A stretch of 64,000 nucleotides of DNA from Monocercomonoides exilis PA203. Taxonomy: Eukaryota; Protista; Preaxostyla. The position numbers and the translations under genes are program-made. Position 1 is the stretch's first letter. Each line of letters starts with the position of its first letter. Positions 55,046 to 62,600 of this stretch are shown piece by piece. The stretch lies in assembly GCA_001643675.2 (NCBI GenBank), contig LSRY02000001.1:1426001-1490000 (forward strand). The letters are read 5' to 3'. The notes beneath the pieces were generated by a model, which searched no databases, was not told the DNA's origin, and worked only from the letters and a program-made list of their open reading frames with translations.

Positions 55046-58012
55046 ATGATTTGGGTTGTGTGCATACTTTGCTATTTGTGCAATAGTAATTTCGTAGGAG
55101 GGCATAAAAGTCAAGCAAACAATTCCAATCAAGAAAAAGAAGAAGCACTACACAAAGAGAATATTATCAGCGTTTTTGAAAGAATTGATCAACCGAGACA
55201 AGATTTCACAACAGCAGAACAAGAGAAAAATGAAATCGTTGAAGAAGAGGACGATTGCGCAGCAGAGAAAAATGAAAGGGAGCTCGAAGAAGTTGCAAAT
55301 AAAAACATCATATTTGAAATGGAAGAATCCTCAGAGGTGCATGACAAAATTGCCAAAAAAGAAATGATGCATAATGAGGAAAATGAAGTGGACGTGGATG
55401 GAGAAAATGGAGTTGATAGCGAAGAATGCGGTCAAAATGGAAAAGTCCCATGCAAAACAATAAAGAAGGCAGTGGAACATTGCAAGCCAAAAAGCACGCT
55501 TACAATTTACACTGCAGAAAGTTGCAATAAATATGACTTTGAGCCAATAACTATTGAAGGATGCGAAATCAAAATATCGATCAGAGAGGGAACAAAAAAC
55601 CGAATTACAACAGCTTTAGATGAAAATAGAGTACAAAAAGGGGATGCATTGTTTAATGTAAAAGACGAGGGGCACTTTCACATGTATAGAACAGACATAT
55701 TCGTGGACACAAAGCGAGAAAGTGGAAGAAATCAGGGATTAATTGCAGTAGAAGGAGAAGGATCAGAGATGGAAATGGACACAATGGATATTTGTAATAT
55801 AGGCTCTGAGAACGTGCTGAACTGTGTGCTGATTCAATGCAAATTAGGAGGATTGAATCTTCAAAAAGTCAAGATCTCTCAGTTTAACTCCTTTTATGCG
55901 TTGATATTTGCTGAAGCTTCTCAAAAAGTTTATGGGTATTATTTAACTTTGGAAGCAATTTCCACACTTAGCAAAACTCAGTCAGTAATCACAGTACTGG
56001 GGGAGTGTCGATCAACACATTTTGATAATTGCAATATTTCAAATTGCCAATCGACAGAGCACAAAATTGGAGGAGCAGTTTATTTGGAAATCTGGAATAA
56101 AGAACATTCTTATTCATTTGACAACTGCCGATTCTCGAATTGTTCGTGCAAAAGTGCAAATGAAAATGAAGTGAAAAGAAATGGGCAGCAAAATGAAGAG
56201 TCGAAAGGAGGAGCAATATATATCCGAGTGGAGGATGGAGCAACTGGAAAATTGAAGTTATCATTAAAAGGGATGACAATTTCGGAATGTACAGCAGACA
56301 AAGCTGAATTTATTTTCTTGTCTCTTCCAGCAGGAAGAGAGCAGATTGACGAAAATGAATTTTGTTTCGAGATGGAAGGGATATATGGGAAGTCAAATTA
56401 CTTATTGCTTGAAGATAGGAAAGAAGGGAGAACAATCGATCTTCTGACAGACAAAGAGAATGGATTACCATATTATTCTGCAAATGTTCATGTGGGAGGT
56501 GACAAAGCAAGCAACGAGAAATCATGCGGACGAAAAGAAGAACCGTGCGATATGATCAGCACAGCCATCAAACACAATCTAAGATATAATTATTTGACAC
56601 TGAATATCATTGAAAGGGTGCCTGTCAATGAACCATTGTTGGGTTTTCAGCATGTAAGAATTTCATCTTTATCAGATTCTTTTTCAGTACCATCCACAAT
56701 AACTGATCAGAATAGAGGAACACTTCGAATTGGAGCAAATTTGAAGGCTGAAGAATCAATTGCAGTATTTGGAGAAAGAAACACTCACATTACGCTTAAA
56801 CATTTTGATATTGAATATCCAGATGCAATTGAAGGAGACGCGCTCAATTTAATTCATGGATCATATGGACTGACTATCACTGATGTTGTCTTTAGACCAT
56901 GGTACACTGGATTAGTGGGAGAAAATGTTCTTGGAGGAGAAGGAAAGCTTCTTCCATATAAATTGATTAAGTGCAACGAAATGAGAGGAAATATTACACA
57001 GCTTACCATTTATGGGAGAAATAGAAACATCACAAGAAAAAATCAACACACAAGCCATGAAGCTAACGAGAGACCGTCGGTAATGGAAGGCAATCTCGAA
57101 AAGGAGAGAATCGATCAAATGAATGAAGAGGATAAACCATTGTGCTCTTGGGATTCGGGCCTAATTTTTCTGAATTTTTCGATTATGATAGAAGTTTATG
57201 ACAGTAAATTTGTTGATATTAGCGACGGTGTTTTCTATTCATTGATATCGAGTTTGAATCTCTATAATTGCAGCTTTGTGAACAATCATCCAGTTGACCG
57301 GGATTGGGAAAAATATCCATCATTGCGCCACAACATTCGATTCGATGGAGATGAGGGTTATGGGACTAGTATACACTCATTGATGCCTGGAAGTGATGGA
57401 TTGGATGGAAAGCCCTTTGGAATGCAATCAAACAGAAAGGCAGGTGGAACAGCAGTTGAGAACATGGATTCGTATTTCTTTTCGCCCATTTTGAAGAACA
57501 TAACAATGAAAAGAGATGAAACGAGAAATAAGAATGAGCAACAAAGTGAAAATGAAAATGAGAAAGAAATTGAGGCAGTTGTGCATGGATCGTATCTATT
57601 TCCTTGTGGACTGACGTTAGAAGCGTCCAAAAAAAAGAAAGGAGAAGAGATGAAATGGACAAATTGCCCAGTTTCGGAATATTCAAATGAGACAGAAATG
57701 AAAGTGAGGATTCCTCCATCCTTGCTTGATGTGGATGAGTACACATCAGTCGTCTGCCGCTTGACATATCCGAGTGGAGTTATTAATGGAGAAAACAAGC
57801 ATTCAGTAAATGTGATTTTGGTGAAACAAAAGAAAGATGATTCAAACGAAAAAGATCAAAAGAAATTGACAAAAGCACAAGTTGTAGCAATCGTTGCCTC
57901 TACAAGCGTTTTTGCAGTTGTAGCCGTGGCGATTGTAATTGTGACAGTTGTGTGTGTAGTCAGAATCAAAAAGCGAAGGCAATACACATCAATCGTTGAT
58001 TCTAAAATTTAA
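55046..58012 (+). CDS. Intronless type-I surface protein (988 aa), same family as 1407-9155, short cytoplasmic tail
   Basis: Signal peptide, CGQNGKVPCKTI and CGRKEEPCDMI modules, GGAVY/GGAIY repeats, TM near the C-terminus, tail KKRRQYTSIVDSKI. Confidence 0.9.
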   Translation: MIWVVCILCYLCNSNFVGGHKSQANNSNQEKEEALHKENIISVFERIDQPRQDFTTAEQEKNEIVEEEDDCAAEKNERELEEVANKNIIFEMEESSEVHDKIAKKEMMHNEENEVDVDGENGVDSEECGQNGKVPCKTIKKAVEHCKPKSTLTIYTAESCNKYDFEPITIEGCEIKISIREGTKNRITTALDENRVQKGDALFNVKDEGHFHMYRTDIFVDTKRESGRNQGLIAVEGEGSEMEMDTMDICNIGSENVLNCVLIQCKLGGLNLQKVKISQFNSFYALIFAEASQKVYGYYLTLEAISTLSKTQSVITVLGECRSTHFDNCNISNCQSTEHKIGGAVYLEIWNKEHSYSFDNCRFSNCSCKSANENEVKRNGQQNEESKGGAIYIRVEDGATGKLKLSLKGMTISECTADKAEFIFLSLPAGREQIDENEFCFEMEGIYGKSNYLLLEDRKEGRTIDLLTDKENGLPYYSANVHVGGDKASNEKSCGRKEEPCDMISTAIKHNLRYNYLTLNIIERVPVNEPLLGFQHVRISSLSDSFSVPSTITDQNRGTLRIGANLKAEESIAVFGERNTHITLKHFDIEYPDAIEGDALNLIHGSYGLTITDVVFRPWYTGLVGENVLGGEGKLLPYKLIKCNEMRGNITQLTIYGRNRNITRKNQHTSHEANERPSVMEGNLEKERIDQMNEEDKPLCSWDSGLIFLNFSIMIEVYDSKFVDISDGVFYSLISSLNLYNCSFVNNHPVDRDWEKYPSLRHNIRFDGDEGYGTSIHSLMPGSDGLDGKPFGMQSNRKAGGTAVENMDSYFFSPILKNITMKRDETRNKNEQQSENENEKEIEAVVHGSYLFPCGLTLEASKKKKGEEMKWTNCPVSEYSNETEMKVRIPPSLLDVDEYTSVVCRLTYPSGVINGENKHSVNVILVKQKKDDSNEKDQKKLTKAQVVAIVASTSVFAVVAVAIVIVTVVCVVRIKKRRQYTSIVDSKI

Positions 58013-58622
58013 AAAGATCAAAAAAAGAATTATCGAATATCTTTTCGATAATTTTTAGAGATTTTCATATTTTTATTTCAATTAGAGAATTTTGTTTGTG
58101 TATTTTATTTCGAATTTCATTCAAAAATGAGAAAGTTTGAAACATAATTTCTTCTAACAAAAAAAGTTGATTTTCGTGAAAAAAAAAAAAAAGACATTTG
58201 TGTTAAGTTTGTTATTTATAATTTGAATGACTGTTTTTGAAATACTCTGTTATTTGAAGTAATCCAACTTCATTCATTTAATTACACATTTTTTCACAAT
58301 CAAAAATTCAAAATCAAATAAAAGAAAGCCAATCAAAAATTACAAAATAATAACGCATTTTCAAAAAAGGAAATTAAATGTTTGTTATTATTAATATCAA
58401 TTTGGAAAATATTTTTATATTCAACAGCCACTTGTTGTGGAAGAATTTATGTGATATTTATGTGAATTTTGCAAATAAAAAGAATGTGCATTTCTTTAAT
58501 ATTCTATTGCTTTTGTCATTTTATAACGTTCACAATCAACTGATTGTAAATATTCATGCAAAACATTGGCGATTTTTTTAAAAAAAAAAATTGATTGAAA
58601 AATTGATTCTGGGCTTGATCAA

Positions 58623-59342
58623 ATGGATTCTCTTTTTGAAGCTAACGGTGTTTTTCAATACATTGGACGTAATCTCGGATGCTGCTGTGAAGAAGACTGT
58701 GACTGTGATGTATATTGTGCACCATCACCAATAGGCGGACAATGCGCGAACTGCGGACATCATCCTTTATCTCATTGTCGTCTTTGCGATAAATGTCAAG
58801 ATCCAATTCTTGATGAGAAATCTGCATATCATCTATGCTGTTTGGATCTCTTGTGTGAAAAATGCGAAGCGTCTTATAGTATGAATTTTTCTTTTTTTCT
58901 TTTAAAATTGTGCATTTTATTCGATTCTGAATATTTTAGAGCCAGATGAAGATATTATTTGTCCTCGTTGCTCATGCCTAACACCAAGAAAGCCATTTGT
59001 TATTTCAGAAACAGATAAGCCAAAAGAGAAACCACAAACTTTGGAAGATCATTTTCAAACTGCTGTCGCTCGTGTTGCTCTTCTAGAAAAACAACCTTCG
59101 ACAGATATAATGCTTCAACTTTACAGTCTCTTTAAACAACAAAGTACTGGAGATTGCACTGGAAAGAGGCCTGGAATGACTGACATTAAAGCAAGAGCAA
59201 AATATGATGCATGGAATTCTCGAAAAGGCATGAACATCAAATTTATCTTTTTCTTTATTAATTTTTTAAATATTGAATAGGCATGACAAAAGAAGAAGCT
59301 ATGAAAGAATACATCAAAGTTGTTGATTCGCTGATGAAGTGA
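58623..59342 (+). CDS. Acyl-CoA-binding protein fused C-terminal to a Cys/His zinc-binding motif and a RING-like domain (2 introns)
   Basis: Exons 58623-58878, 58940-59227 and 59281-59342 join in frame. ACBP motifs LQLYSLFKQ..GDC..KRPG..D..RAKYDAW...KGMTKEEAMKEYI. Confidence 0.85.
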
Positions 59343-59647
59343 AACACTTCAACGTTGGATTAATGATTTTCATCGTTCCACCGCTATGAAGCGATTTATT
59401 CTCACAGATTTTGTGCTTGTTGACGGAAAGTTGAAACCAGTCATTTCGCAATTGTTTCGATTGAAAGAGAGACAATTCATCTTTGAAATAAAATCAAACT
59501 ATATTCATTTCAAATTTTTTGTTAATATGAAAGTCTGTTTTCATTTCTTGTTTTTTCATTTCATTTGTGCATATTTGAAAACGAAAGATATATCCCAAAA
59601 TAATGTCCAAATCATTATTCACAGATTAAATAAAACATTTTTTTGAT

Positions 59648-62600
59648 ATGAGCGATCCTTTTAAAAGAAGAAATGAATTTCAGCAATTTGCAAGGCCAAG
59701 AGGAAATATTGATCATGACGAAACAAAATCATTAAGTTTAAACTTCAAAAATTCTCGGAATAATTTTATTATTTTTGATCAAAAACATCAAATTAGCTTT
59801 CCAATGGATTGATACAGACTATACCGTTTTACAAGAGCCTTTGCCAGACATGCCTGGTTCATGCGTTGGACAAGTATTTCTTCTTTGTTGGAATGAAAAT
59901 TAAATTATCACTTATCAATTGAATTGAAATTAGGTTCCATGCATCAGATTTTATGGAATCACAGAAGAAGGAACTTCTGTGCTTGTGAATTGTCATGGCT
60001 TTACTCCATATTTGTACATCCAAGTGTGCAAAAAATTTCATTTTAATTATGATTCAAATTCACATGTTAAATATAGGAACCTCCGAATTTCACATCTGAA
60101 CATATAAAAGCATTGACTGCAGCTCTGAATAATCATGTTTGTGAAAATTTCAAATTGAATGAGACGACATTTTTATGCAACATTAATTGTTTCAAGGCTC
60201 CTGTGCATTCAATACACAGAACTCAAAAGATGAGTATTTATAATTATCATGATAAATTGGCGAATTTTCTAAAAATATTTGTCCAGCTTCCTTGGCACAT
60301 TCCAGTTATTCGACGTATGATTCTCAATGCTTTATCACTCTTCATTATTTCGTGAATTGAATTATCAGAGGCTTTGAAAGCAGGAGTTGTTATTGAAGGA
60401 TACGGACAGAGGGCATTTCAAACATACGAATCAAACATTGATTTCGTCCTTCGACATTTGTTCGATACAAAAGCAGTTGGCTGCAGCTGGGTCGAACTGC
60501 CCGCAAACGAATACAAGCTCAGAGGAAACGATTCATCAAGTCCTTCGCAAATGAAGCCTTCGAGCACTTGCCATTTAGAAGCTGACATCGCGTGTGCACT
60601 GCATTTGTCCCTCCAAAATATATTCTCAATTAACGAATCTTTTATCTCTAATTTTCTTTTTATATTTTTCAATTGGACTTATCACGCTTTCGAATATTTT
60701 TTGCTTGCCATTCAACAACATCAGATTCCACAAACTTATTTTCCATCCACCTGACGGTAAATACATGGCAATTGCACCTTTTCGTGTGTTATCATTCGAT
60801 ATTGAATGTGTTGCCTCCCAAAAAGGAACTTTTCCACAGCCAGAAAAAGACAAAGTCATCCAAATATGCGCAACTGTTGCTGTTTATGGTTTATTTTGCA
60901 TTTTCTTTCTTTTTTGCTTGTCGAAGAGATTCTGAATAATTTTCTCATTTTCTTAAAAAAATTGACTCGCATGTTAAATACATTGTGTGTTTATGTGAAC
61001 AATTCATCCTTCATTTTGTCTTTGCACACAGGCAAAGTCGAGCCGCTGTTCCGCATTGCCCTTGTGCTCAACACCTGCACGCCAATCATCGGGGCGCATG
61101 TCTTTTCTTATGCGACAGAAGAGGAGCTGCTGAATGCGTGGGCAGACCTCGTCACCATCATCGACCCTGACATTCTGACGGGTTACAACATCATGAACTT
61201 CGATATACCTTATTTGTACAAGCGTGCCACAGCACTCAAATGCACTGGCTCGCACAAAATAGGCAGAATCATCAACTCTCCAATGACTGTGTGTAATTTA
61301 TAACTTGTTTCAGCTCGTTATAAACCTTACACAAATGAAAAACTAATTTCATTTTTTTTTTACTCGATGCGTGCTCGTGTATTCTCTTTGTATTTTTGAA
61401 TTATCTATTTCTTTTTCAGGTAAAATTGACTAGTTTTCAGAGCAAACAGAAAGGACATCGCGAAATCCACGACATCTCAATCGACGGGCGGGTGATGATT
61501 GACATGCTGACGGTGATGCAGAACGACTACCGCCTCTCGTCATACTCGCTGAACTCTGTCTCTCAGAAGTTCCTGGGCGAGCAGAAGGAAGATGTACACT
61601 GGGCAATAATAGGCGACCTGTTTGAGAAGGACGCAGAGTCGAGGCAGCGGCTGGCTGTGTATTGTCTGAAGGACTCGCTGCTGCCCTGGCGGCTGATGAC
61701 GAAGCTGATGGTGATTGTCAACTTTGTGGAGATGGCGCGGGTGACAGGAATGCCGATGAGCTACATGTCCACACGAGGGCAGCAGATTCGCGTGGTGTCT
61801 CTTCTGTACAGAAAAGATGCTGAGCACAACATGGTTATTCCTTTCTTGGACAACGGAGGCTCTGGAGAAAAGTTCAAAGGAGGAGAAGTTATCAGTCCAA
61901 TAAAAGGGTATTATGACGATCCTGTTGTGACACTGGATTTCTCGTCGCTGTATCCATCCATTATGATCTGCCACAACTTGTGCTATTCCACCCTCTTGCG
62001 CCCTGAGCAGATGTGTTTGATGAGCCCAGATGAATACATTAAAACCCCGTCAGGCAACTTCTTTGTGAAGGCATCTGTTAAAAGAGGGGTTCTTCCAATT
62101 GTTCTTGAAGACTTGTTGAAGGCGCGTTCGAAGGCGAAGAAGGAGATGAAGGAGGCATCTGACCCGTTCAACGCTGCTGTTCTGAATGGGCGGCAGCTGG
62201 CGATGAAGATAATGGCGAATAGCGTTTATGGCTTCACTGGAGCACAGGCAGGAAAGCTTCCTTGTTTGGAGATCTCGCGGAGTGTGACAGCGTTTGGACG
62301 AGAAATGATTCTGAAGACGAAGAACATTGTGGAGACTCATTATGTGAAGGCGAACGGGTTTGAGAATGATGCTGTTGTGGTGTATGGAGATACAGATTCA
62401 GTTATGGTGAAGTTTGGGATGAAAGACTTGCACACTGCAATGGAGAGAGGGAGAGAGGCAGCAGCGTTCATCACATCGCAGTTTGCTCCGCCTGTCAAAT
62501 TGGAGTTTGAGAAGGTATATTGGCCGTATCTGCTGATGTCGAAGAAGCGATATGCGGGGCTGTTCTGGACGAAAGAGGATAAATTTGACAAGATTGACAC

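Follow-up and report, generated by a model that had tools for sequence, protein, structure and literature searches.

The gene at 58623–59342 on the + strand of a window of 64,000 nucleotides from Monocercomonoides exilis PA203 (assembly GCA_001643675.2, contig LSRY02000001.1, positions 1,426,001 to 1,490,000 of the forward strand) encodes a single protein of 201 residues, in which a predicted zinc module and a probable RING-type finger are followed by an acyl-CoA-binding protein (ACBP) domain. The presence of these three elements in one polypeptide was supported by sequence comparison, and the whole N-terminal half was confined to oxymonads in our search. As to what this half does, we considered it an even prospect that it serves as a docking or adaptor part for the acyl-CoA carrier, in analogy to other multidomain ACBPs.

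The gene has three exons, and its ATG was located at 58623 upon inspection of the stretch 58300–59700. When the open frame surrounding exon 1 (window 58599–58946) was used for a word search, it retrieved the protein KAH7832535.1 / XP_067736390.1 (MONOS_5445, M. exilis; hereafter P0001), with which the separately translated exons together with the two split codons were identical; the three-exon model, including the GC–AG intron, had therefore already been deposited in NCBI, and P0001 was used for all whole-protein analyses. The initial annotation had joined two open reading frames into a protein of about 200 residues by removal of a 61-nucleotide GT–AG intron (58879–58939). This joining agreed with the deposited 201-residue protein and with the conserved position of the intron, whereas the second intron (GC–AG, 59228–59280) had been overlooked. 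When intron 1 was retained, the frame ran into a stop at 58947–58949, and when intron 2 was retained, into a stop at 59278–59280 with loss of ACBP helix 4; splicing of intron 2 is thus required, because the last ACBP helix is otherwise out of reach.

Retention of intron 1 leaves exon 1 as a free-standing open reading frame of 108 residues and the donor of intron 2 is non-canonical, so that one could also think of two separate genes or an annotation artefact, in which the Cys-rich frame and the ACBP would be expressed independently. The comparison with related genes spoke against this. Exon 2 contains no in-frame ATG ahead of the ACBP domain, and therefore the ACBP is not translatable alone; its start, with the terminal RING ligands and the TPRKPF tail, is Met-free and conserved in all orthologues ([DE]-[DEN]-I-[ILV]-C-P-x-C-x-C-x-T-x-R-[KS]-x-F). 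Intron 1 was found at the same codon and in the same phase in seven further sequences (a twin copy on contig C7, a paralogue on contig C6, Blattamonas, Streblomastix and the loci L013, L014 and L016), and for intron 2 the codon is likewise shared by the C6 paralogue and Blattamonas, whose introns are GT–AG, while the C7 twin keeps the GC donor and L013 and L016 lack intron 2 with the frame continuous. Both positions and phases are common to the window gene and Blattamonas, and intron positions and phases are kept in three named genera. Moreover, the zf-RING_5 and ACBP profiles each cross one exon junction unbroken, and the twin copies are separated by 10 silent changes versus 1 replacement. 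We rejected the two-gene reading on these comparative grounds and regard it as highly improbable; the indirect evidence for one gene, as read from the sequences, is strong.

Table 1. Exons, introns and predicted domains of the gene (window positions; residues of P0001)
Feature	Position	Strand	Codons or residues	Description
Exon 1	58623..58878	+	codons 1–85 and base 1 of Lys86; translation = P0001 residues 1–85	N-terminal beta-hairpins, 5-Cys/2-His module, RING ligands 1–6 (predicted)
Intron 1	58879..58939	+	splits Lys86, phase 1	61 nucleotides, GT..AG (GTATGA...TTTTAG)
Exon 2	58940..59227	+	remainder of Lys86, codons 87–181, base 1 of Gly182	final RING ligands (CPRCSC), conserved TPRKPF tail, acidic linker, ACBP helices 1–3
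Intron 2	59228..59280	+	splits Gly182, phase 1	53 nucleotides, GC..AG (GCATGA...GAATAG)
Exon 3	59281..59342	+	remainder of Gly182, codons 183–201, stop TGA at 59340–59342	ACBP helix 4
N-terminal zinc module (putative)	58680..58775	+	residues 20–51	no Pfam model
RING-type finger (probable)	58785..58977, split by intron 1	+	residues 55–98	spacing, predicted fold
ACBP domain	59047..59324, split by intron 2	+	residues 122–196	PF00887

The ACBP half of the protein was matched by PF00887 with 99.1 bits (gathering cut-off 28.3, expectation value E = 1.6e-28) over profile positions 2–76 of 76, continuous across the exon 2/3 junction, and exon 2 by itself reached 71.6 bits (E = 6.1e-20); solved ACBPs in the PDB matched at E down to 4.4e-19. 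Bovine ACBP contacts acyl-CoA through Tyr28, Tyr31, Lys32, Lys54 and Tyr73, and in the alignment to the bovine structure 1aca all of these were retained save position 31, where Tyr is conservatively replaced by Phe. The full-length AlphaFold model placed helices at residues 120–131, 140–154, 168–178 and 185–200 with a predicted local distance difference test score (pLDDT) of >90, and in a shape search an Atlas cluster of ACBPs resembled the predicted domain with a template modelling (TM) score of 0.90 and a root-mean-square deviation (rmsd) of 1.3 Å over 89 residues. The assignment of this half as ACBP is firm by the profile match, and the model predicts a canonical four-helix (up-down-down-up) bundle with intact ligand-contact residues, just as the initial annotation had described an intact ACBP domain.

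Upstream of the linker lies a Cys-rich stretch with the motif C55-x2-C58-x14-C73-x-D75-x2-C78-x2-C81-x11-C93-x2-C96, followed by an invariant C98 and a conserved C-x-T-x-R-K-x-F tail. Its spacing fits the RING consensus C-x2-C-x(9-39)-C-x(1-3)-H-x(2-3)-C-x2-C-x(4-48)-C-x2-C save for ligand 4, which is Asp in nine sequences and Glu in one (L014), and the RING-spaced Cys array with Asp in place of His noted in the initial annotation was confirmed. Chance is an unlikely source of the motifs, as the putative zinc ligands of both this finger and the N-terminal module are all kept in about 10 orthologues and paralogues of 36–65% identity. Acidic zinc ligands are used in some known RING variants, and the second zinc site may be formed either with the acidic ligand 4 or with the invariant C98 completing it instead.

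Searches by sequence gave little for this region. Pfam on exon 1 alone returned only noise (DUF6729, E = 3.6), because the RING is divided by intron 1, and a PDB sequence search with residues 1–110 returned only chance matches (a taste-receptor cysteine-rich region, E >5). Profile search of the finger against the PDB yielded weak matches, mostly to RING domains (CNOT4, PCGF6, Pirh2, Hakai and TRIM21, E = 0.17–7), of which the PCGF6 alignment places Asp75 beneath the RING His. Structure prediction was more uniform. In an AlphaFold model of residues 1–112 built on an 18-row alignment, residues 51–105 had pLDDT of 86–90, and the leading Foldseek matches of the model were RING domains (TRIM2, PML, TRIM21, TRIM25, TRIM23, TRIM32, RNF168, TRAF, RNF213 and HRD1; probability up to 0.97, rmsd 2.2–2.9 Å over about 50 columns). 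VIA-align against 48,161 chains likewise gave RING domains in nearly all of the best 50 rows (top rows: SEA complex with Z = 5.7, Nse1, APIP6, TRAF6 and KAP1). The named rows of an Atlas feature search with the N-terminal half were all RING families at scores of ≤0.81, to be taken as a lead only, and the same search with the whole protein against named clusters gave no usable match. We consider a RING-type fold probable, since the matches were almost uniformly RING and modest scores are expected for a domain of 50 residues.

The ACBP half would bind long-chain acyl-CoA like other ACBPs, and the zinc-finger half, from whose conserved double zinc module the ACBP would be held by an acidic linker of about 15 residues, would dock on another protein or on a complex, where the acyl-CoA pool would be placed or read out. 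The protein is a soluble chain, and the whole-chain predicted TM score of its AlphaFold model (0.44) suggests that the two halves are independent domains, not confidently packed together. RING domains that recruit a ubiquitin-conjugating enzyme (E2) typically have a hydrophobic residue before C2 (the second zinc ligand), an aromatic or hydrophobic residue in the helix, Pro after C7 and a linchpin Arg or Lys after C8, as seen for c-Cbl–UbcH7 and RNF4/BIRC7. In the oxymonad finger, the residue before C2 is Lys, Gln or Glu in every orthologue, where Ile, Leu or Val is usual, and the linchpin position after C8 is variable (Ser, Gln, Asn, Lys, Phe or His). The best VIA-align match is the scaffold RING of the SEA/GATOR2 complex. 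We favoured docking because the E2 contacts are atypical and scaffold RINGs of the SEA/GATOR2 kind are among the best structural matches; since the E2-contact positions are atypical, activity as a ubiquitin ligase (E3) through E2 recruitment is possible and was rated less likely.

Several observations weigh against this interpretation, either against the gene model and the RING assignment on which it builds or against docking in place of catalysis. Splicing rests on annotation and comparison, and the RING assignment, probable and not proven, on a structure predicted from a shallow alignment. No Pfam RING model reached its gathering cut-off in M. exilis, Blattamonas or Streblomastix, the scores for zf-RING_5 being 17.1 (E = 0.0054), 17.9 (E = 0.0032) and 24.8 bits (E = 2.2e-5), respectively, against a cut-off of 27.9 bits, with positions 2–42 of 43 covered in all three. 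The view that the Cys region folds as a RING thus stood as far as the AlphaFold confidence and the structural matches go and fell short in Pfam. The Foldseek E was never <0.2, and the VIA-align Z stayed <6, in a range (<8) that the tool rates as common. With regard to function, most RING domains act as E3 ligases, and of the four usual E2-contact features two are retained: Pro after C7 is kept in every sequence, and the fourth residue after C6 is Tyr in one of two paralogue lineages, type A (His in the other, type B), a position which we take, from the structure of c-Cbl, to be equivalent to its Trp408.

These last features also bear on a different possibility, namely an active RING E3 ligase in which acyl-CoA bound to the tethered ACBP controls either catalysis or the choice of substrate, so that the protein would be a direct metabolite-sensing ligase. 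The RING-type spacing and predicted fold, the invariant Pro and the type-A Tyr, the short conserved linker between the RING and the ACBP, and the intact ACBP pocket are all in keeping with it, and RNF146, in which a WWE domain binds iso-ADP-ribose, provides a precedent for a ligand-gated RING. The replacement of the hydrophobic residue before C2, the varying linchpin position, the acidic ligand 4 in place of His or Cys and the sub-threshold Pfam scores count against it, and we judged this alternative rather unlikely. Still less likely, in our estimate, is the more specific combination in which acyl-CoA occupancy opens or occludes the E2 face of an Asp-type RING about 15 residues away, while the N-terminal module is independently a new, widely scattered eukaryotic zinc-finger family absent from Pfam. 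Both E3 ligase activity and acyl-CoA sensing are guesses drawn from the sequence.

The N-terminal module preceding the finger has the pattern G-C-x4-C-x-C-x2-Y-x6-G-x2-C-x2-C-x-H-x4-H with C21, C26, C28, C41, C44, H46 and H51 as predicted ligands, so that the C-x4-C-x-C..C-x2-C-x-H-x4-H array seen in the initial annotation was recovered at residues 20–51 and found conserved in relatives. Among 17 copies, G20, C21, C26, C28, G38, C41, C44, H46 and H51 were invariant. No Pfam match was obtained for the module in exon 1, P0001 or the orthologues, and AlphaFold modelled it with low confidence (pLDDT 56–67). An exhaustive search also recovered the module from three types of unrelated eukaryotic proteins that have neither RING nor ACBP (P0009-P0014, P0013/P0024 and P0021, from ENA (European Nucleotide Archive), Logan and JGI (Joint Genome Institute) data): proteins of 270–320 residues with two tandem copies, an ankyrin-C2-kinase protein with a copy between its C2 and TKL kinase domains (P0013/P0024), and a protein ending in a PARP catalytic domain (P0021). 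A word search with P0009 for a family name returned ten proteins, none of them named. Known fingers were also compared: SWIM (C-x-C-xn-C-x-H) was rejected, having no Pfam match, PHD because the module has no His in the required place, and AN1, B-box and the DHHC cysteine-rich domain for their ligand order. The module is possibly an undescribed small zinc-finger family, predicted from its conserved residues to bind zinc.

A PDB profile search with the module gave only non-significant matches, which included the zinc element of RNA polymerase beta-prime with the same spacing C-x-C-x12-C-x2-C (E = 0.5–9, a lead only). This spacing, the recurrence of the module as an accessory finger in kinases and PARP-domain proteins, and the basic T-x-R-K-x-F tail behind the RING would suit a protein whose zinc-finger half binds nucleic acid or a membrane lipid and which acts as a regulator responding to acyl-CoA or as a carrier tethered to membranes. 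We regard this as improbable: the similarity in the PDB is non-significant, the model of the module is of low confidence, nucleic-acid binding is rare among RING folds, and no evident nuclear-localisation or membrane segment was seen in the P0001 sequence. Docking onto a protein remains the favoured role of the zinc-finger half.

In order to delineate the distribution of the architecture, we ran a profile built from the N-terminal half over 1.84 billion representative proteins and obtained 13 matches at E ≤ 0.001. The whole half, i.e. module plus RING, was confined to oxymonads in this search (Monocercomonoides, Blattamonas, Streblomastix and Logan assemblies), and the RING-type part was not found outside oxymonads. 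The rarity of the RING–ACBP combination proposed in the initial annotation was thereby borne out, and its call for orthologues in other metamonads was answered for Blattamonas and Streblomastix, while non-oxymonad preaxostylans showed no match to the profile. The Blattamonas nauphoetae protein KAK2964138.1 (204 residues) is annotated as one protein with the same architecture and its ACBP at residues 122–196; the Streblomastix strix protein KAA6355418.1 is partial and covers the module and the RING; and the contigs of the Logan proteins with module and RING bear the ACBP exon downstream. Two further orthologues, P0027 and P0028, were among the 11 candidates of a word search that used the ACBP half as query. 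Two matches were counted as compositional and not as relatives: P0006 (1841 residues, 15 short matches) and P0008, a bacterial protein of 2034 residues with a CHU_C domain. Since non-oxymonad preaxostylans were without a match, the sequences suggest that the fusion originated within oxymonads, although missing entries in a database are a weak argument. In the Atlas, a shape search with the full model showed no RING–ACBP among the 30 nearest models, which were only ACBP alone and ACBP–hydrolase, and the literature searched contained nothing on a RING–ACBP fusion or on ACBPs in oxymonads.

In the Streblomastix protein KAA6355418.1, the zinc module is shorter by seven residues (x-H-x-P-x2-H), whereas the genome encodes K-H-Y-P-N-[TAA]-H-S at this place. 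With an earlier splice acceptor and translation of TAA as Gln, these residues are recovered (locus L018, SNRW01034649.1, 440–620); Streblomastix uses a variant genetic code in which TAA encodes Gln, and the gene also contains in-frame TAG and TAA elsewhere. The apparent deletion looks like an annotation artefact. The orthologue in Blattamonas is flanked (JARBJD010000003.1, L017 1–1372 and 2413–3703) by a gene with faint TPR/ANAPC3 matches and by a gene for Rpn13, a proteasomal ubiquitin receptor; this Rpn13/ANAPC3-like adjacency is probably coincidental.

The genome of M. exilis contains three such genes, i.e. the window gene, its C7 twin (MONOS_11340, P0002; G000:C7:58480-59199, locus L001 1501–2220), which is a cluster mate of P0001, and the C6 paralogue, which is 45% identical, about 190 residues long and of the same architecture with one extra intron. 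The relatives fall into the two lineages, type A and type B, with shared intron positions, and both types are present in M. exilis and in the organism of SRR13490893; the duplication is therefore old. The zinc-finger half is present in each of the three clear ACBP-domain genes (3/3) of M. exilis. A further, multi-intron gene (C35:333714–333903, − strand, locus L011 about 1374–1853) has weak, exon-split ACBP matches and appears to encode a short ACBP of canonical type that lacks this half.

Between the window gene and the C7 twin, 13 differences were counted within the gene: 10 synonymous, one non-synonymous (Thr184Ser) and two in intron 1 (ratio of non-synonymous to synonymous rates, dN/dS, 0.024; binomial p = 1.2e-6). 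When the count was repeated exon by exon with the split codons excluded, exon 1 had nine silent changes (9/10 of the silent changes) and zero replacements. These counts place the gene under strong purifying selection. The segment holding both copies is about 90% identical over >2 kb upstream, and from about 58850 to the stop codon the copies are nearly identical, introns included, after which identity is 59% over the next 300 nucleotides. The near-identity of the 3′ part followed by an abrupt fall past the stop suggests gene conversion of that part. Directly upstream of the gene, the window contains an open reading frame of 988 residues with a C-terminal membrane segment (55046–58012, + strand).

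With respect to the deposited record, the gene model was already public, and what is new is the zinc-finger half, which is unannotated: the precomputed Pfam annotation of KAH7832535.1 shows ACBP (PF00887) alone. Its product name, ‘putative esterase’, is wrong, being unsupported and misleading, as the Pfam scan of P0001 detected no hydrolase domain. The name probably derives from bacterial fusions of ACBP with an alpha/beta-hydrolase, because these were the sole other architecture near the protein in the Atlas shape search.

The fusion pairs a RING-type partner with ACBP, which was undescribed in the literature searched, and is conserved, duplicated and under strong purifying selection in a whole protist order. 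Because all three clear ACBP genes of M. exilis carry the N-terminal half, it is likely a main route for acyl-CoA handling or sensing in mitochondrion-less cells of the M. exilis type. A catalytically active RING would make this protein a compact metabolite-gated E3 ligase found in nature, and if such an acyl-CoA-switched ligase were true, a single protein would link lipid supply to protein turnover in an organism without mitochondria; if the RING is not catalytic, the fusion would represent a new way to anchor an acyl-CoA carrier.

Known partners of ACBP domains are ankyrin, kelch, GOLD, isomerase and membrane segments, as in ACBD6 (ankyrin), ACBD3 (GOLD), plant ACBP4/5 (kelch) and ECI2 (enoyl-CoA isomerase), and in the multidomain ACBPs that have been studied the extra module attaches the carrier to partner proteins or to membranes. 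The oxymonad protein resembles them in joining a canonical PF00887 bundle to a second module, but differs in that this partner is a putative RING-type finger with a zinc module, lies N-terminal to the ACBP and is contained in a protein of only 201 residues. The bacterial ACBP–alpha/beta-hydrolase fusions (Atlas row 2) share the ACBP domain, whereas the oxymonad protein is without the hydrolase. With the C3HC4/RING-HC domains (c-Cbl, TRIM2, TRAF6, PCGF6; zf-RING_5), the finger has in common the cross-brace spacing of its eight putative ligands, the predicted short central helix and the Pro after ligand 7, and it also ends in C-x2-C-x-C as c-Cbl does; unlike in them, Asp or Glu stands at ligand 4, the E2 contact of loop 1 is polar, no linchpin is conserved and the scores are 17–25 bits versus 27.9. 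The nearest precedent for a metabolite-gated E3 is RNF146, which likewise tethers a RING to a small ligand-binding domain (structural match 4qpl, Z = 4.3), except that there WWE and iso-ADP-ribose take the place of ACBP and acyl-CoA, that homology is limited to the RING fold, and that gating in the oxymonad protein is hypothetical. As a domain combination, the oxymonad protein adds to the known multidomain ACBPs a lineage-restricted type with an atypical RING-type finger.

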